Shown here: positions 26,301 through 38,554 of the stretch, piece by piece
How the letters are laid out: each line of letters starts with the position of its first letter
How positions within the stretch are numbered: position 1 is the stretch's first letter
NCBI GenBank assembly: GCA_965637545.1
Contig: OZ281499.1
Location: forward strand, 24,056,001-24,120,000
Direction: 5' to 3'
DNA: 64,000 bases
DNA from: Phallusia mammillata
Taxonomy: Eukaryota
Notes under the pieces: generated by a model
What the model was told of the DNA's origin: nothing
Database searches by the model: none
The model's input: only the letters and a program-made list of their open reading frames with translations
Program-made: the position numbers and the translations under genes

Positions 26301-27393
26301 CTCTGGCTAGATAAATGATTTAAACTTCAAGAAAACTACTAAATTTACGTGATAAGTTTGTAATAAAGGCACAAACACGTCGTTTGACGACATTAGTTGT
26401 AGGAATGAATTCAGGTTGCAAGGCAAGAAATGAAGTGCAAGGAAAGGCATAAAATGATTAAAGTTTGAAAGTGTTAAATGACAGAATTAAAAAATTTAAA
26501 TTTCCTGAAAATCAGACGTTTTCGACTTTAATAGCATTTAAGTGAAAACACTTTATTACTGTTTCTATAAGTGGAAGTCGATTGTACACGAGCAACAAAT
26601 ATTTTTGTCATTATGCTACAATGTGTAAATTTAAGGTTGAAATTACTTATTTGTATTTTGTTTATGTTCGGGTTTTTAGTCATTCCTTATTGCCATGTAG
26701 TCAATTGGATCAGCATAAATTAATAAAGTCAAATTTGGAACCATGGGGTTGTTTTAATTCTGTCCACAAATATGATTAGAGACTAAAAATTGCCAAACTT
26801 CGAAACCACTGGATTTCAAACTATATCGGTTCGTTTTGGTGCTGTCCATAAAGTGTTTAATCACGGGTTAACCAGATGATTGATTTGGAAATTTGGATGT
26901 GAGTAAACGATGTAGATGTGTGATTTAACACTGACGGCAGGGGTTTGGCACAATGGCTGGGTAGCTGGGAAGTGGAGGGTATGTGCAAGCGCTAAGCATG
27001 AAGGGTAATGAAGTAGATTTTGACTTTAGGATGTCGTGTTGTGAATTATCAAGCTCAAAGCTCTAGACAAAGTGCTATTAATATTTACAGAAACTTTGAG
27101 TGCGTTCAAGAGAAACACGAATTAAAAGGGAACGTATGCGAAACTTATAATGTCGTAAATAATCATAAAATCATGATAATTATATGGATAAAAACATTAC
27201 TTAAACCCACTAATTACGAATTAGTGTTAATTAAAAGAAAGTTTATAATGCAATTTATCTTCTTGGTCCAAAGCTTTCGTTGGCGTCACCGTAACGGTAC
27301 AAATGACGTCATGTTGGTCTTGAATCAACAGCTTATGCACAACAGAATAACAGTATTGCAGTTATGTGACCGGGGATACAAGAGACAAGGTCA

Positions 27394-30300
27394 CTAGAGG
27401 TCGTCGCTTTCTGGGAGCAAACTTTCCTCCAAGTATTTCATGGAACGAGGTTGGTGGAAGGTCCGCTGGGGGGCGTCCTCGCGCAGAGCTTTCAAAACTT
27501 CTGATTCCTCGTTGTCATCTCTGCAACAAATCAGAACTACAATCAAATTTTGTGGTAGCGTATTCAAAAGCTGTGGAAAGCAAGAAATACACAGATATGC
27601 TTTAAACATGAAAAAAATCGTGTCGATACATACAACTAACCTGCAGCTGATACCTGAAATATGTTATGCTGCCTCAGAGTTGCAAGTCGGGCCGGGCTTT
27701 TCGGGCCGGGTTCGGGTTCGGGCCGGGTTCGGGCCGGGTTCGGGCTTAGGTATTTGTGAGAAAACGGGCTTAAAACGGGCCTGACTTTACGTTCCGTGTC
27801 CGCCATTTTTTTAAATAAAATCACTCAGCTAAGTAACAAGTCTCTGGATTTGACCTAATGCCCACCCTACTCTAAAAAATATTGTTTACGCCATTGTCTA
27901 CTATTGTTCATTGTGTTTGTTGTCTTTCTCTTTTTTCTTTCTCATCCTTTGTTGCGAGGCTTTCGTGGATAGGCCTGTTAATCAAAATTTCGGGCCTAAA
28001 CGGGCTTCTCAAAAACGTTTCGGGTTCGGGCCGGGCTTCGGGCTTATACTTTCGGGTTCGGGCCGGGTTCGGGCTCAGATTTTGGGCCCGCTTGCAACTC
28101 TGTGCTGCCTTGCTGAATCATCGCAATTCACTTTCAGTAAAACTTTTCATCACATCCTGTTAGCAGCCTCGTTGCACTTTCGCTTGTAAATCATACAGAA
28201 CTGGTTGACCTCCATTTTTGAACCGAGCAAATGTCGCATAAATACCATTTGCTGCTCGTGTAACTTGTTTCCATGCAATAACTGCCTGAAATACGCTTCT
28301 CCAATCTTTAGCTCATTGTTAAATGCCGTAAACATGAAGCAACTCGCCCAAAGTAATACAAAACTGCAACAACCTTTTCATTGAAACCAACAATCCAGCA
28401 AACACGTAACCGCGCGCTATGTTGGCCAAAACATGACCACAAAGTTATGTTAGACACTCTTGTATTTGGACGACGGTTTGTAAGCTGAAAAGCTTCGGAA
28501 CAAAACCGTCTTTGATAACTTGCAGTCACAACTTAAAGATCAAAAACAGTTTGGACTCAACAGCAATTTGTTTCCACTTTTGCTTGGAATCAAACAAACA
28601 AGCGAACATCGTTTCTTCAAACATGTTTTAGTTGATCAAACTTTATTTTGTTTTTGTTTGTTTAAAAAATGTACTTGTTATTAAAGTAGGTGTTATATGC
28701 GTCGTTATGCAAGCTCTGGAAACAGTTTCTAAAATATGAATTAAGCATTTAGCTGGGCTAGCTCGACTACATCATCACGTTTCCTACATCACGTTGTATT
28801 ACATTCCGTGGCTTACTTTACACGCCAATATGACGTATTACCGGGGCAGGAAATGCTTATGCATCATCAAGCCCTGCCCTAACATGCGTAGCTAAACACA
28901 ATAAAACTTCATATTACCAAATAAAAGTATGATAAACTCGCATCAAAATACCAGGCATTGAGTAGTATCTACGTTTTGTGTGGGAGAGTAAAGCTTTTTA
29001 TTTATAATGTGTGTGGTAAGCTGACTAATCAAGTGCCAATCTATTTTTTACTGTCAGAAGTTGCAATGTAAACAATGCCTTTGTGCAACTCACATATGTT
29101 GTACTGATGGATGCACAAATCAGCAAAATGCGCATGATTCCCAGATTAATTCATGGCGAAACCACAAAAACTGTGAAATAAGTATGACTTACATTTGGTT
29201 TTTCAACTGTTACCTAAACTAATATCGCTATTTTTTGCCTAAACCAAACTAGCAACTTCTTTGTAATAAAAAATAATATGTAAAAACTTACAATTCAATA
29301 AATGGAACTGACTGTTTTTAACTAACTAAATTCATATTGCTAAACTCTAATCTAAAACTCAGCACAAAGTAACAACTGATATTTTCATAGGTCATTTCAA
29401 CCTTCCTTACCAAACTTGCTATTTATGTCATATTGTAAGTAAGTTTGTTCCTTTGCTGAACTTACTTGGTTGGTGATTGCTTCATTTGACCTTGATATGA
29501 GTCTTTAACATTTTGAGATGAATACAAGCCCAAAGAAGTACTGGCAACTACCCTTTTTGAGTCCTTAACATTTGATGGGGGAACAGAATTGGAGCGCTGC
29601 TGGGTTGTCTGCTGTGTGATAAAATGTTTATGATCAGTGACAGGTATTTGCTATTGAGGATTTATGGACCACATAGCTGGAGTGAATGTGTACAAATCAT
29701 TGTCAAGCTGTCACAACCCTTATATTAGAAACTGTAAAAATAATAAATGAACAGTAGTCAGTGTCAATTCAACTAGATATGCTTTGTCATACGGTTTTTA
29801 TACAAACGGTTTACATGCAAAGTATGTTTAAATGTCAGGATGCACAACAAAACCATAAAAAGAAACCTAAATTAAACTAAACTATGGTACTTACATGGTT
29901 GGTTCCATCAGTTTTTACAGTAACTCGACACCTTGATGATTTGGAACCATATTTGTTCATAATTGTACAAGTATAAGTTCCCAAAAGCTCAGGTGACAAT
30001 TCACCGAGTACAACAGTATGGACAGGCCCTGTGTAAATACAACATGATTTTGTAATGAATTGTAAATAAATACCAAGAATTGGTTAATTAATTATTTTAT
30101 AGTTACACACAACAATTTAGCCTAATAGGGTTTGTTTGCTGGTATAGAAGGGGTGTTTCGGCATGGCTAATTTAGTTTTTTTTTTTTAAATGTAGTTGAT
30201 TACCATGAAATGCATTCTGCCAAATAAACCAAAATTTTAACCCTAAGCCCATTTTCACCCTAACAGGGACCCCAAACCAGCAAACTTAAACAAACAAAGA

Positions 30301-33300
30301 AATAACAATAAGTTAAAAATGTAAATATCCAAAATATATGAGCTGAATCAACCTGGAAATACACAAAATGTTTTTTTAACTTTGCAAATGCATGCTGATC
30401 CTTTTTTAAGATTGACTTATTTACCGTTGCTTAGGAACCGAATATCTTTTTCCTTTGATTCCCTTGCTGGTTTATTATTGTGATACCAATGTACAGAAGG
30501 AGTTGGCATGTTGGAACCCAAACGAACTTCTAAAACAGCTGGCTCACCCATTGGCGCAGCAATGTCTTGCAAAGCCTGCAACCAAAACATAACAGATAAA
30601 TAAAACTGCTGTGATCCTGTAAATTGTTTTCAGCCTTTTCAAGTCATGCAGTTTTGCTCTAACGATTCATAAACTTTGTTACAACATGGACTCACTCAAA
30701 TAAGACCAGACAAAAAACCTTGTACAACCTATTGACTTGTACAGTTTGTGTAAGGAAGGTAGCAATTATTTAATCAGACTGACGTATGTGACCTTATAAC
30801 ATCTTCAAGGCCACCCACCCAAATAAACTAACAATAATGAAAGATTTTGTTTTTGCTTTATTCTAAGGATACTGTCAAATTGCACTAAAAGGAAGTCGTG
30901 ATTTTAGTTGAAGTAGTAATAGCTGCATTTAACATTTCACAGCAAAATGTTAAACAAAAGTGCAATACCTTAGCAAAGGTTGGTTCCCCATATCTTGGTG
31001 CTGCAGAGCCTTGAAAGAACTTTCCGATATTTCCGATCGCTTTGCTGCGATCTGCATTGCCGTTTGCAGGTGGTGCTGACTCAGATGGAAGGACCCCATT
31101 GCTGGAACTATAACAGACAAAATAAAAGAATCACCAAATAAGCTACATGAACATAATTATTCCAGTCTCCAGACATGTATTGGTCAATGAAGTTGTTAAA
31201 ATATTACTACAGTATAAGAGATAACTAAGAAAACTACATTTTTACTAAAAACTAAAAAACTAAAAAAACTACATTTTAGTTTAAGAAAATTAAAAAAAGC
31301 TGTCATGCAAATAAAGAATGAACAAGTTGTATATCTTTATGTCCTTAAAAGAACCTTAAGAGTAAAAGGTTTTCTTTGTGGCTGAATTATGGCAAAAAAT
31401 CACAATGAACTTTCAACAATGAAACTTTTACATTTGCCCTTCAGGTATTACATAAACCACATCACACAAGTTGATTCGGTTGGACAAAAAGCTCTTTTAT
31501 CCAACACAGTGTAATTTCCATGGCAAAAATTTTCCAGTAACAAGAGAAACATTTAAGCCACTACATGAGAGTTAATTGCTTTTTCATTGATTCACAATGG
31601 AAATGAATCAGCGGAATTTACTATGCCCAAAAGGGTAATTACAACTTCAGTGGAGCAATTGAAAAGTCATGTCTGGCTGTGACTAAACAATACCCAAACA
31701 CTCTGGAATGCAAACAACCATTCAATGGCATTGTTACAAAACAAAACACATTCCAAAAGTGTCTGTAAGGCTAACAAGTGCTGTAGTTTAAAGGCAGTTA
31801 AATTGGCCTCGGTTTGGTGAACATACACGGCACTGCTGTCAAGCACCAATTCATGTGTGAGTAACCAGTATTGATTTGTGGTTTGTGGTCATGGAATTCA
31901 CTTTGAAAGACAATTATGTCACATTATTAAATACTGTTTCTGTTATGTATGACATATATGGTGTGTTTACTTGACATATATGACCCTTTAGCTTTTTCAT
32001 CATTTTTGAAATAGTTCAGTTAAAATGATTTTAAGCAAATTAAACATTTCTAAATGTTACAATTCCTGTATTATTAGGCACAAAGTAATACAAACATGTC
32101 TTAAATTTTGTCTAATTTAACCATTTTACACAACAACTTTGAAAAGAGCTCTGGCAAATTTTTACCTGACATCATGCGATGGCCAAGTTTTCACTTCACT
32201 TGCTTTCATGCTCCCTGGAGCTTCTTCCTTGCTTTTCTCTTCCTCTTCCAACATTTCCTTGATCTCAGGAGTGATAGAGATTGCTTTTTTCTCTTCAGCT
32301 CTCACAGGGGCTACAGCATAAAACATTTTCACTTGTTACAATACTGTAAATCTACTTGTTACATTTGGCATTTAGGAATTAAAAGCAAATTAACTGGGAT
32401 ATAAACCGGTTGTTTACTTCTGTTGCTTAAACTGTAAACTACTATCCACAAGTAATTACAGCACCCAATGAAAAACCCAAATTGATTCAAGTTTGCAGAA
32501 AGCTTTAAGCTTTGTACAAATTACAAACTAAAAGTCAATGTAACCATCACCTTGAATTAAAAATACAGAATATGAAACGTTTCTGACCTTTGTATGGCTT
32601 GACCAGAGCCTTATTCATTGCAGGTGATTGTGTGATGGTTCCTTCCTTTTGCCAGTTTCCTGCGTCTTCATATTTCTGGTATCTTGTCTCGCCAGGCTGG
32701 TAAGTCACACTGCAACACAAGACAACATTTCAATGGCTTACCAAATAGAAACCAAAATCAACTCAACTTGGTTGAAAAGATAAAAAAGGAAATTATTATG
32801 ATATTTGTGTTTACATTCCCATAAACGTAAATGGTACCAAGTTGTTTGCTTAAATTTAATGCTATCTGTGTATAAAACTACAAAACTTACAAGCTATTCA
32901 GTAAACACATTTTTTCCTAATAGGAGCAGAAGCAACTCTAATTGAATTTTTTGAATAAAAATGGTTGGCAACAACATTGAACTACAACAAAGGAAACCAA
33001 TAAACCTCAAGGAGGGGTGCTGATTTAAAACTCAGACATTTCCCCTAGCAAGTATGAGGTAATATTCACACTGCTAGATGAAAATATTCAATGAATTATT
33101 CCACACCTATTTCACAATACCTCAGGAGTCAGGACATTATATTTTATAACATAATATTTAGATATGAAAAGAATCTTTGTAATCTTTACAATAAAAAACA
33201 GACAATCAAGTAAACATATAAAGATAATTTGGGTGAATCATGCACAAAACATTTAAGTTCAGCTTCCATGCATTAAACAAATATGTGCACCATGCACAGA

Positions 33301-35119
33301 AGTAGGTTTCAATAATATACCTTGGTTTTGGTTGTTCTGGTACAGTTGTTACATAAGGTGCAGGGGCTTGTCCTCCAGTTTTAGGTTTGCTAAATAACAG
33401 AAAGTTTTGTTTAAATATTAGGTGTACAAGGGTGTGATTTTCAGACTGTTATTTTTCCCAAAAAGAAAGTCTACTGGAAACCAAACATACATAAAAACAA
33501 ACCAAACATAAAAATGAAAGACAATATTTGAAAATACACATTATAGTCAGCAATACATCTATCTTGTTACATTAAGTGCATACACAATAAAACATAAAAT
33601 CAACCAAAACCTGCAGCATACATGACAAATCATGTTGTAGTTCTTAACAGTTTGAGTTTTAACTCTATACATTGTAAACTTCATATACAGACTAAAGAGA
33701 AATGCCTTTGTGTAAGATACGACCAAATTTGGTAGCATAGACTTGAAGTGGCCTTAAGTTGGTTGGTCTAGTGTTTGACAAGCAATTATCATTTCTCTTA
33801 ATTACAGTCCCACTAGTTCAGTAGGTAAAATAAACAAAGTCCATTTGAAAGCAAGTTATTTATATCAGTAGCTTACACCACACCACAATGTTTACAGTAC
33901 CAACAGTAATGGGTTAAACAAAGCTACTGTCAGCTCTTTGAAGTGTTCATGTCAAGTTTATAATAGTAGTCAAAAATCAAAGGAAAATGCACTATGGATA
34001 AACATATTTTGAATTACCCAAACAAACATTTATGTCTGCTGCAGTCTGCACATAGTTTTAAAAGGTTTTAAAAAAAATTAGTTAATACTGTTTAACAATG
34101 TGTTTATTATTAAGAAAATACACTTTGTCTAATGAACTGTAAGTCTAATGAACTGAATTGTATGCTTTCCACAGCTTGCACAAAGGTATCATTTTACATT
34201 ATACATGTGGATGTTGAGTTACAGCAGGACTGAACAACCTTAAAATTTGTGGGGGCACACATATGTATTTTAAGCTGTAAGTGATAGTCTTTTATCAATT
34301 CAAAGCAAAAAAACGGTGACCCAATGCTTTACAATAACAATAGAAACATCACAAACATTTAAAAATGATTGGCAAACCATCATCTACGCGACAAATCCAT
34401 TTTATTGTAAGCAAAATTATTAGGTGTTGGTCATATGTAAAATAAGAGCATTCAAAGTGAAATGTACATTTTTATGATGGTGAAAAACACCCAAGAAACT
34501 TTTGGAAATTACCTTAGGTGCATAGTTAATGTGGCTCCTGCACTTTTAATTTTATTTTGTGCTTCATGATGTCCAAGATTAGCAAAATCATCCCCATTTA
34601 CTTTTTCAATGATATATCCTTCAATGACTCCAGATCTGGAAGCTTTTCCACCAGCAGTGACCTGAAAACATATTATTGTTTTAAAACAATAAACAGTAAT
34701 AGATTATGTTGACAATAATGAAATGGCTTTCAAAAGTTGAATTTATGACCATGGCCTCATAGCCATCTTATCCAACAGGCAAGGCCTTGGTGGTTCAAGG
34801 ATTAAGCCTCAAATAAAAGTTTTTCTAGGAATGGTACAGTAATAATAAGCCGTTTTCAAAGCATAATTTTTATATTGTGCATTTTTTCGAATACAATTTC
34901 ATTGCACTTCAAAAAATACTGATTTTAACACTATTGTACACAAACATAAATAGCCAAATTTACAGCTCCACCCACTATAATCAAATTGCAATGGCAAAAG
35001 GATCCAACAGTGGAATTCATACACACCTTTGCAATTGCCAGGGGTTGGTGAAAATCTTTTCCGCCCTTCATTTTGAAACCCCAAGGGGAACCCCCGGTTA
35101 ATGTAATAACAACAGCCAT
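27394..35119 (-). CDS. ALP/Enigma (ZASP/PDLIM)-family protein with PDZ, Ig I-set, ZM and ALP-like motifs, no LIM; 424 aa
   Basis: Ten GT-AG exons with matching phases: 35119-35027, 34661-34513, 33389-33321, 32709-32588, 32310-32166, 31107-30969, 30575-30425, 30028-29895, 29611-29466, 27520-27394 (1275 nt). PDZ: GGSPWGFKMKGGKDFHQPLAIAKVTAGGKA...HHEAQNKIK. Ig: EPTFAKALQDIAAPMGEPAVLEVRLGSNMPTPSVHWYHNNK...LGTYTCTIMNKYGSKSSRCRVTV. ZM-like: STSLGLYSSQNVKDSYQGQM. ALP-like: EESEVLKALRE...PRSMKYLEESL. Confidence 0.88.
27675..28102. mobile_element. Non-autonomous hAT MITE (428 bp) in the last intron of the PDZ-Ig gene
   Basis: TIRs CAGAGTTGCAAG(T)CGGGCC; perfect 8-bp TSD TGCTGCCT (27667-27674 / 28103-28110); arrays of TTCGGG/CCGGG sub-terminal repeats. 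Confidence 0.92.
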
Positions 35120-36437
35120 GATCACCTAAATCCTACTACTCCACTATGTATTACTCTAAAGACAAAATAAATGGTAAAACGGTAAAGTTTAAAGAAGATA
35201 ACTTAAACTATGCAAACTGTATATATGTGTGTTAGTTTTTTGACGAAATAGGTGTAGAGTAAACCAAAAACAGATGATAACTTGAATTTAATACATAAAA
35301 TGACATAGCTTTGCCTTTAAAACACATGATTGCAGAAGTATTGATAAAAAAAGCATTTCTAACCAAGTAGAATTTAATTTACCACACATTTATTACAAGC
35401 TGTATCTATTATTTGGCTTGCTTAACATTAACGCAAAGTACATTTTATACTAACTTCAAAATGGCAGCGGTGTTATTAGCAAAATAATAAATAACAACAA
35501 ACAATACAAACAATAAACAACCAACACTGACTGCTATTTAAATTTTAATGCAGACTAAAAACAATAAAACCTCTTTAAAGTCAAAATATTAACTGATCTA
35601 CGGTAGACTGACAATTTGGAAGTTTACATGACTCAGTGCCGGCCGGCAAGTCTGCAAAGCAAATGCGGGAAACAAAATGATAAATCATTTATTTACATCC
35701 CAGCAGCGCGGCGAACCACGTGACCGAATTGTCTGCGGCAGACAACCATTATTTTTAATTGGGGGCAATCAGCAATTAAAGCTATGATACGCTTTCATCA
35801 AGAATATTCACGAGTTAAACTAAACATATATCATAAATAAACAAGTGGAAGAAGAATTTGGATTCGGATAAGATAAAAGTATTTTAAAACGGAAGCGATT
35901 CAAAATAGTTAAATGCACATAAAAGAATAATATTTTTTTTGTTAAATTACCAATGCCGCTTTTTACATGGTTTAATCGGCTTGCTGGAAACTGCGAAATT
36001 CTTTTATAAAGTAGGCGATGTACACAGTTCTTTAATGTGTGTCAAATCAGCATACAAAAATGTACAGGGTGTTCATTTGAATCTAAACGTATGGCGGCTA
36101 TTGTTTGAACAAACCAGTTTTGCCTTGCTGCTTGGTGTTTTGGCCCGAAAGACGACAAGGTTAAAATGGTTTCATGTCATAGTTTAGTTTGCACAGGTAT
36201 ACTACATCAATAACTTTTTGTACAGCTGATTTAATTTGAAGTGGCAACGACACTCGATCTAGACGTTACAAGTAAACACTTTATTTGAAACTAGTTAGAC
36301 CAGTAGAAAAAAAAATAATAGACCAGTGAATAGACCAGCGAATATTGTTTGGTGAAACATTTGTGTAAGAAAAATTTTAATGACATTTGCAGGTTGTGTA
36401 AGCAGATTTCTTTATTAGATTACACTTATTTTGCAAC

Positions 36438-38554
36438 ATGTCAAATCAATCGGTCAACAATTTGACCCTGATTCTCCAGAATCACCAGTTTTCAACGTCA
36501 AGGTTCGTAGCTAAGCAAGTCATCTGGACAATTCAAATCATGGTCTCTGTCTATCTGATCGTCGTCTTAATTTTATTCGAATTAAGACGAAACCCGGTTT
36601 CGGAAAGCACCCCTTTTCGTAGACGCCATTCTACCACAAGATCAAGGAGCACAATTGCCAGTTCGGCCGCAGCATCCCGCAAGACAGTTTGGTTGAACAT
36701 TTTTGGAGAAAACCCTATGTGCATACTCACAATGACGTCAGTGCTATTTCGCTGCGTCCTCTTACAGATGGAGTTCAACTTCGGGAGCCAGTACAAAATC
36801 GTGTGCGAGACTTTCAGTTGGATGTACACCCTATTTGGCACAGTGGGGTACTTCGGGGTATACATGTTACTCTGGGCCCGGCAATGGGGTTTGTACAACA
36901 GCAAGCCACTGAAACCCCTGTTTACCCGGCGCACAAGAGCTATCAGTATTGCCGTTATGATCAGTATGGTAACTGGAATGGTCGCTATTAGTGTTTTGTT
37001 TATTCTAAGTTTCAATGTCATAACTCTGACCCCACGAGGCTGCGTTTTCCAGGACACATCGTCTGATAAGTTGATCTTCACAGTAACGCTTGCTACCATG
37101 GCTACCGGGTCGGTTATAATTCAAGCTTGCCTTCTTGGCTTGACGGTCTATCCTTTAAGTAAACAGTACGAAACTTTCTGGTGCTGCTGCAACAACAACA
37201 AGAAAACTGATCAAAGTAGTGCTTCAAACTCATTAAAACGAGTGCGGGTAAGCAAAGATGAAGTTACTGTACAAAAACTCCAAAACAACACCACAAAAGC
37301 GACACAATTGATACTATTGAGCATTGGTTTTTGCTTGGTAATTTCCCCTTTTTGTCTAAATACCTTCAAAGATTAGAGAATAACCAATTTTCGACCACAA
37401 ATTAGGACGCGTCCAGAATTGGCTAACAGTCTAATGATAAACAAGCGTTTGTGTAAAGATAGTGTAGGTTGTTACTATATATGTTTCGTTAAGTTGCCAT
37501 TGACGTAACTTAAGCTAACAATGAAAAGTTGGGGCCCAATAGAAACGCAATGAAAGAAACCAACTTCAAAACAAATACTGGGTCGTAATCGATAACCTGA
37601 GTTTTGGAATTTTACAGAAAGTCATCCGGCGAATCTCAATCAGTTGTGCAGTATGTATCGTTTGTGACATATTCGTCGGAGCAGCGGCAGGTCTTCATAC
37701 TTCGCTGACAGGAAGTCGAAACACCTTTCTCCTAATGGCCTACGTTATAAACGTTACCGTGAATGTCGTTGCGGTCATTGGATCTTTCACCGACTGGAAA
37801 GATCGCCTCCTACCTATGCTGCACCGCTCCAGCGCCCCTAGTGTTCCAGCCGTAAGGAGTTACGTGAGTGAAGCTGCGACAACAAGCAGGGCAACAGCTG
37901 ACACGCCGATACGGACACCACAAAGTAAGAAAATACAGCAAGTTTAAAAAAATAAGGGCACCGTTAGTCACAAGATAAACTAAATTGTCTTTCCTTGGCA
38001 CACTTTGCGGGCCAACATAACAAAAGTTCCTAAAAAAGTTAATTATCGACTTTATTATGGTGAGTAATGTTGTATTGTTTTTTTTTTATTACCAAATAAA
38101 AAAATATGAGCTTTGAAACGTTGCCATGGACTCCAGCATTTCGTCATCAAGTCCTAAAACTCCAGAGAATGTTTCCATTTTAAAATAGATGAAATTTTCA
38201 AGGCACACTTGGAAATCTCTCACGGCATACTAGTGTTCCGCACCACACAGTTTAAAAATCACTGCCCTACAGTTTCTGGCAATAGTTTCCAACTTATTCA
38301 ATTAATGTTACAATATGACTAAAAATGTATAATTTGTCTTTTATAATCTATAATTTCTCGTAAGTATATCGTTGGAAAAGTCTTCATAAGCAAAGGTTCA
38401 GCATTTAGTCATAATGATTTTGTTCGTTTATTTAAAGCGTTGTATGTTTATCATTCTAGATCAAGCGACAAACCGAGTTGTCATGACAACCAACGAAATC
38501 CAAGTGATGGAAAAACAAACCTCACTTCCTGGAACTTCCGGTGCTGAAGAATAG
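36438..38554 (+). CDS. Orphan seven-transmembrane (GPCR-like) protein, paralogue 1, 403 aa
   Basis: Exons 36438-37247, 37618-37924, 38460-38554 (phases 0,1). Seven hydrophobic segments, N-terminal N-glycosylation sequons, conserved Cys at the top of TM3 and in ECL2, LWARQ in place of DRY. Confidence 0.8.

Follow-up and report, generated by a model that had tools for sequence, protein, structure and literature searches.

An ascidian protein with an immunoglobulin domain between an ALP/Enigma-type PDZ domain and ZM/AM-like motifs

The Z-disc and actin stress fibres are organized at their core by PDZ-LIM proteins and by proteins with immunoglobulin (Ig) domains, among them myotilin, palladin and titin, and both groups are linked to disease. 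Vertebrates have the two as separate molecules that bind one another. The classical ligand of ALP/Enigma PDZ domains is the tail of alpha-actinin, and a class III motif, E[ST][DE][DE]L, reported by von Nandelstadh and colleagues in 2009, is said to connect myotilin, palladin, myopalladin and FATZ to the PDZ domains of ZASP, ALP, CLP36 and RIL; palladin and myopalladin end in ESEDL. Here, we analyse a gene of the ascidian Phallusia mammillata, a member of the group that comprises the closest invertebrate relatives of vertebrates. It lies on the minus strand of a 64,000-nt stretch of contig OZ281499.1 (C6 below; gene at 24.08 Mb), which we call the window and whose positions serve as coordinates throughout, and it encodes a PDZ domain, an Ig domain of the I-set type, a ZASP-like motif (ZM) and an ALP-like motif (AM) on one chain.

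Members of the ALP/Enigma family that lack LIM domains are known (PMC9751615), and two Ciona 'ZASP-like' genes with PDZ and ZM and without LIM have been listed (te Velthuis et al. 2007, PMC1781342). No myotilin homologue was found outside vertebrates (Puz et al. 2017, PMC5479843). The word 'immunoglobulin' has no occurrence in the 2007 study, in a 2022 review of the ALP/Enigma family (PMC9751615) or in a 2023 review of PDLIM proteins (PMC10754285), and searches by accession and name returned no literature on the Phallusia protein, the matches to 'palladin' combined with Ciona being mostly unrelated Ciona papers. Within the searched literature, the PDZ-Ig architecture is thus undescribed for the ALP/Enigma family, as a preliminary description of the window, made from its letters alone, had supposed, and the sequences themselves are already in databases. 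The reading that we favour, with moderate confidence, is that of an expressed, trans-spliced gene for a 424-residue cytoplasmic scaffold of the ALP/Enigma lineage, which is LIM-less and carries a titin-like I-set domain between its PDZ domain and its ZM/AM-like motifs.

Gene structure, transcripts and domain order

Reading of the three minus-strand frames with anchoring of the exon ends gives an open reading frame (ORF) of ten exons, from the ATG at 35119 to the TAG at 27394 (1275 nt, 424 residues plus stop), in which each of the nine introns is GT..AG, the reading phase is kept across the joints and the stop codon (27396-27394) falls inside the terminal exon (Table 1). Such a ten-exon, phase-consistent frame was precisely what the preliminary description had proposed; its two ends coincide exactly with the stop codon and the ATG, and all the strings that it quoted (EPTFAK with its P-x-F start, HWYHNNKP, GTYTCTIMNKYG, LGLYSSQNV and SEVLKALRE...RSMKYLEE) are present. 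When exon 7 was compared with 1.84 billion representative proteins, it retrieved a 424-residue protein (P0012) that is 100% identical, contains the exon at residues 240-289 and equals the spliced model; its UniRef/nr entry is 'Palladin-like', Phallusia mammillata, A0A6F9DNM6.

The structure is borne out by transcripts. Transcriptome-sized runs of the same organism contain 15-17% of the words in a 5.7-kb stretch, roughly the exonic share, and four runs from four studies were compared with positions 29300-35290. In three of these studies, exons 1-9 are contained in one contig each (X1, 2194 nt; X2, 1523 nt; X6, 1476 nt), with eight of eight exon joints at the predicted positions and the skipped ends reading CT..AC on the plus strand, that is, GT..AG on the minus strand; the run from the fourth study yields fragments consistent with the gene model. 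Because the 30-nt overhang that all three contigs carry before 29466 is identical to positions 27491-27520, at the acceptor of exon 10, exon 9 is joined to exon 10. Moreover, contig X1 extends 1015 nt beyond exon 9, and positions 26506-27520 are covered to 0.85-1.00 by transcriptome-sized runs from three studies, so that transcript and genome are colinear throughout the terminal exon. No skipping of the Ig exons was seen among the contigs, which drop rare variants, so that minor isoforms may be missed. The joining of the Ig exons to the PDZ and ZM exons in mRNA, on which the preliminary description had staked its proposal, is therefore found in single contigs from three studies.

At the 5′ end, contig X6 stops matching the genome at 35157 and continues for 23 letters, whose reverse complement reads GAGTACGGG followed by ATTCTATTTGAATA and then the genomic AG. 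GAGTACGGG is the end of a template-switch oligonucleotide, and ATTCTATTTGAATA is the 16-nt ascidian spliced leader (ATTCTATTTGAATAAG in tunicate trans-spliced mRNAs). Seen in one contig (X6), the leader is attached to an AG acceptor that precedes the ATG. The mRNA of this gene is spliced-leader trans-spliced and starts 36 nt before the ATG and, therefore, has no upstream coding exon.

The PDZ domain occupies residues 1-85 and is matched by Pfam in the whole protein at residues 8-79 with 45.8 bits. Its top 16 matches in the PDB are all PDLIM1-5, PDLIM7 or ZASP/Cypher, with E-values from 6.6e-21 (ZASP) to 7e-15, in the order ZASP, PDLIM7, PDLIM4, PDLIM1, PDLIM2, PDLIM5 and PDLIM3, after which there is a gap to DLG4 at 1e-10; the domain is thus of the ALP/Enigma type, as had been proposed. 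AlphaFold2, run on an alignment of 15 family sequences, assigns the PDZ domain a predicted local distance difference test score (pLDDT) above 90 and the Ig domain one around 90 or higher. Outside these two domains, it predicts disorder with short helices at residues 159-172, 218-225, 366-377, 390-397 and 408-417.

The Ig domain is likewise complete, in agreement with the preliminary description: the I-set profile (Pfam PF07679) matches the whole protein at residues 235-327 over all of its positions (1-90 of 90), with 44.8 bits against a cut-off of 23.7. An I-set match is present in 15 of the 15 family members, in all of which P235 and F237 are invariant, and eight strands are predicted in the Phallusia domain. 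The B strand (AVLEVRL) has no Cys and hence cannot form a disulfide, which suits a cytoplasmic Ig. Among PDB entries, titin is the best match (1e-30 for the multi-domain chain 3b43; 48.5 bits for Z1Z2), followed by Robo, neurofascin and SPEG, and palladin (2dm3) reaches 32 bits; no myotilin Ig is among the PDB matches at E < 0.001. Judged by these matches, the domain is a generic intracellular I-set of the muscle type and not specifically palladin- or myotilin-like. A simple origin by exon shuffling, suggested in the preliminary description, finds no support here. The first Ig strand (PTFAK) is encoded together with linker sequence at the end of exon 6, so that exons 7 and 8 do not make up the whole Ig as a clean cassette, and a search of the genome for a close paralogue of exon 7 found exon 7 alone, so that no shuffling donor has been identified.

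DUF4749 (PF15936) matches residues 361-417, the ZM-AM region, with 15.3 bits and an E-value of 0.037 (cut-off 28.7), and sub-threshold matches to it occur in 4 of the 15 family members. In the 15-sequence alignment, the ZM core has an invariant L363 and nearly invariant Y364 and S365, and farther downstream S389, V391, L413 and D423 are invariant and R408 is nearly so. A family profile spanning ZM to the C-terminus was searched against about 170 other proteins, mostly giant Ig proteins, and its best non-family matches were two fish PDLIM2 sequences and a fish PDLIM4, with 15.7, 13.5 and 10.7 bits and per-sequence P-values of 8.6e-7, 4.4e-6 and 3.3e-5, respectively. In the AM region, EESEVLKALRE...SRTMKYLEEQL aligns with ESEVYKMIQE...QSNTFKMLQEVL, and hhalign gives a P-value of 1.1e-4 and a probability of 57%. 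The reference pattern for AM is SEVYKMLQE...QS.SF..LQ in two helices, and two helices are predicted here as well (390-397 and 408-417). The AM-like assignment thus appears reasonably supported, below curated thresholds as it is. The order PDZ, Ig, ZM-like and AM-like seen in the preliminary description is thus confirmed and is transcribed in one mRNA, with the ZM and AM assignments below the curated Pfam cut-off.

The protein has no LIM domain. Strictly defined PDZ-LIM proteins carry between one and four of them at the C-terminus, and the Phallusia protein therefore falls outside that group. A scan of both window strands for LIM-like zinc-finger patterns returned only junk matches, and in a genome-wide Pfam scan the LIM match nearest to the gene lies at 11.0 Mb on contig C6, about 13 Mb away. 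Elsewhere in the genome, a compact canonical ALP/Enigma paralogue is located on contig C8 (6512165-6516714, minus strand). The PDZ exon of this paralogue shares 45% identity with exon 2 of the gene described here, and three Pfam LIM matches follow within 4.5 kb downstream of it on the same strand. Phallusia therefore has both a classical PDZ-3xLIM gene and an Ig-bearing, LIM-less gene.

Orthologues with PDZ and I-set are found in three ascidian orders and in a second clade. They comprise proteins of Ciona intestinalis (LOC100177804 / XP_002127748 / H2XKB3; 425 residues, 60% identity; 'palladin-like'), Clavelina lepadiformis (LOC143464982; 430 residues, 56%; uncharacterised) and Styela clava (XP_039273110; 576 residues, 35%; 'PDLIM5-like'), along with several unnamed transcript contigs of various lengths from Logan and JGI. 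The domain order is the same in orthologous transcripts or proteins of at least four ascidians. A tree of the part from Ig to C-terminus separates two clades with 100/100 support each, one of which is ascidian. The second is represented only in JGI metatranscriptome, Logan and ENA assemblies (SRR28369012, JGI 3300018950, ERZ27288795), that is, in plankton and other transcripts, and contains long forms with PDZ (P0184, P0188) as well as shorter ones that lack it (P0105, P0182 and others), with hardly any differences in the downstream part. According to a Logan contig (L006, SRR28369012) and a JGI contig (L008, 3300018950), the orthologous gene makes both PDZ forms of 538 residues and PDZ-less forms of 372-423. 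Since one PDZ-less contig carries a template-switch oligonucleotide at its 5′ end and an in-frame stop before the ATG, it has a true 5′ end, and PDZ-less isoforms arising through an alternative first exon are therefore real in the second clade. No spliced leader was seen at the 5′ ends of second-clade contigs, and the ESM Atlas returned no match for this clade. From other phyla, no named protein is among the matches listed; the searches relied on shared 5-residue words, one of them with at most 8000 candidates, and do not imply absence elsewhere. Two linker patches are kept in both clades: Q-S-P-[SA]-[FM]-x-K-A (residues 125-140) and N-I-[GS]-K-F (residues 214-225), the latter being the predicted helix directly before the Ig.

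With this distribution, the gene is not specific to Phallusia but an old one that ascidians have conserved, and the lineage specificity proposed in the preliminary description cannot be kept in its narrow sense. As for the architecture being catalogued already, which that description had named as a point against itself, the sequences are indeed present in databases as predicted 'palladin-like' or 'PDLIM5-like' proteins, and no paper describing an Ig in the family was found. One of the two Ciona 'ZASP-like' genes of 2007 may be the orthologue of the Phallusia gene; in a truncated copy of the PMC1781342 supplement, the PDZ and ZM strings of the Ciona protein were not found.

Table 1. Features of the Phallusia gene in window coordinates, with their content and the evidence for them
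Feature	Position	Strand	Content and evidence
5′ untranslated region (UTR)	35120..35155	minus	Begins at trans-splice acceptor tttag|AGTAAT, 35156/35155
Exon 1	35027..35119	minus	ATG and first PDZ half, residues 1-31, with PWGF carboxylate-binding loop; contig joint 34659/35025; alignment to ZASP PDZ starting at residue 1
Exon 2	34513..34661	minus	Second PDZ half, residues 32-80; Pfam PDZ 28.9 bits for the exon alone; best PDB matches PDLIM7, LDB3/ZASP, PDLIM1/4/5
Exon 3	33321..33389	minus	Pro-rich linker; AlphaFold pLDDT < 50
Exon 4	32588..32709	minus	Linker with conserved Q-S-P-[SA]-[FM] patch; P133 nearly invariant
Exon 5	32166..32310	minus	Acidic helix, residues 159-172, ITPEIKEMLEEEEK
Exon 6	30969..31107	minus	Linker with N-I-[GS]-K-F patch and first Ig strand EPTFAK, residues 234-239
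Exon 7	30425..30575	minus	N-terminal I-set half (WYHNN); I-set positions 7-50 of 90, 21 bits for the exon alone; contig joints 30574/30968 and 30027/30424
Exon 8	29895..30028	minus	C-terminal I-set half (GTYTC, NKYG); I-set positions 62-90 of 90, 18.7 bits; best PDB match titin; pLDDT about 90 or above across the Ig
Exon 9	29466..29611	minus	ZM-like motif STSLGLYSSQNV, about 29542-29498; contig joint 29611/29895
Exon 10 (terminal)	26506..27520	minus	Last 42 codons, TAG and 3′ UTR of about 890 nt; coding part 27520-27394
AM-like motif in exon 10	27415..27510	minus	Residues 387-418, EESEVLKALRE...RSMKYLEESLL; two predicted helices
C-terminal pentapeptide E-S-D-D-L	27397..27411	minus	Candidate class III PDZ-binding motif
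Signal ATTAAA near the end of exon 10	26532-26527	minus	
Signal AATAAA near the end of exon 10	26557-26552	minus	

Three further features of the locus deserve mention. Within intron 5, positions 31307-31460 are matched by a separate X1 contig of 154 nt, with low depth (2.7) and a T>C difference at 31338, which might stem from pre-mRNA or from a transcribed repeat, or represent a minor exon. Intron 9 harbours an element of about 428 bp (27675-28102) resembling a miniature inverted-repeat transposable element, with terminal inverted repeats of 19 nt (CAGAGTTGCAAG...) and repeats of GGGTTCGGGCCGGG in its interior. A first look at the genome gave 2031 candidates for this element, and the 40 that were scored have 92-100% identity, pointing to recent activity of the family. 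An intron-less ORF of 312 residues on the plus strand (36438-37376), located upstream of the gene some 1.3 kb from its 5′ end, has several hydrophobic stretches and may encode a membrane protein.

The C-terminal tail and a proposed function

The Phallusia protein ends in ESDDL, a feature absent from the preliminary description, and this ending fits E[ST][DE][DE]L as a sequence match. The same pentapeptide closes the Ciona and Styela proteins and P0034; Clavelina, P0168 and P0044 end in ESEDL and P0154 in DSEDL, so that eight of the nine ascidian-clade sequences have the ending [ED]-S-[DE]-D-L. The last exon of Phallusia alpha-actinin (contig C1, 15761339-15761506, plus strand) ends ...STALYGESDL, NALDYQSFSTALYGESDL, before the stop codon, and this GESDL tail is the same as that bound by vertebrate ALP/Enigma PDZ domains. 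By sequence, then, one chain has both a PDZ reader and a tail resembling the ligand of such a reader.

The protein most likely acts as an alpha-actinin/actin-associated scaffold, possibly with self-association through PDZ and tail. The gene structure, the transcript, the domains and their conservation rest on observation; the partners, the cellular site and the self-association are inferred. The PDZ domain would bind ESDL-type C-termini, first of all that of alpha-actinin, and the ZM/AM region would make further contacts with the rod of alpha-actinin, in the manner of ALP and ZASP. The Ig domain would provide a second docking surface, the role that LIM has in the relatives, with actin, filamin or a titin-like protein as candidate partners. 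The ESDDL tail, as a putative ligand of ALP/Enigma-type PDZ domains, could plausibly serve head-to-tail chaining of molecules, an autoinhibitory fold-back or docking onto the PDZ-3xLIM paralogue.

Several observations weigh against this interpretation. Both the ZM and the AM assignment fall below the curated Pfam threshold (15.3 versus 28.7 bits), and for the ZM-like part the main evidence is the L-Y-S core, in addition to the DUF4749 match that starts there. The Ig domain has no specific similarity to those of palladin or myotilin, and a role in binding actin or filamin is therefore not transferable from these proteins. The tail is not uniform: the ascidian-clade sequence P0155 ends in SDDN, and only [DE]-D-L is kept in the second clade. 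When the PDZ domain (residues 1-90) was modelled together with the C-terminal 40 residues, the complex prediction reached 0.09 against a mark of 0.34, which lends self-binding no computational support and, with a tool that is unproven for peptides and disordered chains, speaks neither for nor against it. Finally, since the runs carry no tissue label, 'muscle' is taken over from what is known of the family; the muscle expression and the link to actin or filamin that the preliminary description had proposed are putative.

Alternative explanations

A more specific reading, which we consider unlikely, makes the protein a self-ligating unit of the Z-disc, in which the PDZ domain of one chain binds the ESDDL tail of its neighbour, or this tail competes with the GESDL tail of alpha-actinin; chains or an autoinhibited form would result, and the Ig would serve as the site for cargo or a filament. 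If it were true, the wiring of the vertebrate Z-disc through PDZ domains and E[ST][DE][DE]L tails would predate vertebrates, and a single tunicate polypeptide would unite roles that vertebrates divide between PDLIM proteins and myotilin/palladin.

According to another scenario, the protein would be the tunicate counterpart of myotilin, palladin and myopalladin, an Ig protein of the Z-disc that gained a PDLIM-type PDZ domain by fusion, the PDZ-less isoforms being the original ones. The tail fits the motif of that family, a cytoplasmic I-set is present, the full 5′ ends of the second clade yield PDZ-less forms consisting of Ig, ZM, AM and a DL ending, and the niche appears to be empty, given that no myotilin homologue is known outside vertebrates (Puz et al. 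2017, PMC5479843). However, there is one Ig and no tandem pair, the palladin domain 2dm3 reaches 32 bits where titin Z1Z2 has 48.5, myotilin Ig domains are absent from the matches at E < 0.001, and the PDLIM-type ZM/AM motifs that follow the Ig are foreign to that family. As to the acidic tail, five residues could be convergent. We regard this origin as quite improbable, and, as far as the domains indicate, the protein falls outside the palladin/myotilin family, its database name notwithstanding.

Much the same low probability is given to the view that the protein is a LIM-less 'blocking' or capping member, comparable to short ZASP isoforms or to Zasp66/Zasp67, which would limit the growth of Z-disc-like assemblies by occupying alpha-actinin or PDZ sites. 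It has PDZ and ZM/AM without LIM, the same genome encodes a canonical PDZ-3xLIM protein that it could oppose or work with, and LIM-less relatives are on record (PMC9751615; Ciona 'ZASP-like', PMC1781342). Nevertheless, a conserved, well-folded Ig domain and a conserved tail resembling a PDZ ligand suggest added binding capacity and not mere loss.

An artefact of architecture, whether by merging of adjacent or nested PDZ-ZM and Ig genes or by a rarely included Ig cassette, is extremely improbable: exons 7 and 8 are jointly phase-symmetric (0/0), so that skipping them would keep the frame, and contigs that drop rare variants leave room for minor isoforms, but single contigs from three studies span the PDZ, Ig and ZM exons with exact joints, the fourth study is consistent with them, the same order recurs in orthologues of at least four ascidians and the first Ig strand shares exon 6 with linker sequence. 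As the main form, a chimeric gene model is ruled out by the transcript contigs spanning exons 1-9.

Comparison with known scaffolds

Ascidians keep a PDLIM-type PDZ domain, a titin-like Ig domain and a tail resembling a PDZ ligand on one small chain. Should the tail bind PDZ domains, the protein would offer a compact natural model of Z-disc scaffold assembly and a clue to the wiring of the vertebrate network; embryos of Ciona and Phallusia permit quick reporter and CRISPR tests. The names 'palladin-like' and 'PDLIM5-like' are misleading, and the family merits an annotation of its own.

With the ALP/Enigma proteins (PDLIM1-7, ZASP/LDB3/Cypher, Drosophila Zasp52 and C. elegans ALP-1), the Phallusia protein shares the type of PDZ domain, including a conserved PWGF loop and a conserved His where helix B begins, and a disordered middle part in which a ZM-like L-Y-S core precedes a putative AM-like motif of two helices, order and spacing being alike. 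It differs from them in having no LIM domain, a complete I-set between PDZ and ZM, and the ESDDL end. Short ZASP isoforms, the 'ZASP-like' proteins of zebrafish and Ciona, and Drosophila Zasp66/Zasp67 resemble it in combining PDZ and ZM without LIM; these LIM-less members are, however, described as PDZ and ZM only, with no Ig noted.

The likeness to myotilin, palladin and myopalladin (and to FATZ/myozenin) consists in the cytoplasmic I-set, an end that fits E[ST][DE][DE]L and the NCBI/UniProt name 'palladin-like'. In contrast to them, the Phallusia protein has a single Ig and not a tandem pair, this Ig resembles palladin no more than it does titin or Robo, and it possesses the PDZ domain and the ZM/AM motifs that those proteins lack. 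The titin-type I-set domains (titin Z1Z2 and I-band, SPEG/APEG-1 and telokin) provide the best sequence matches to the Ig, and the fold is confidently predicted; here, however, the domain stands isolated in a small scaffold and not in the array of a giant protein.

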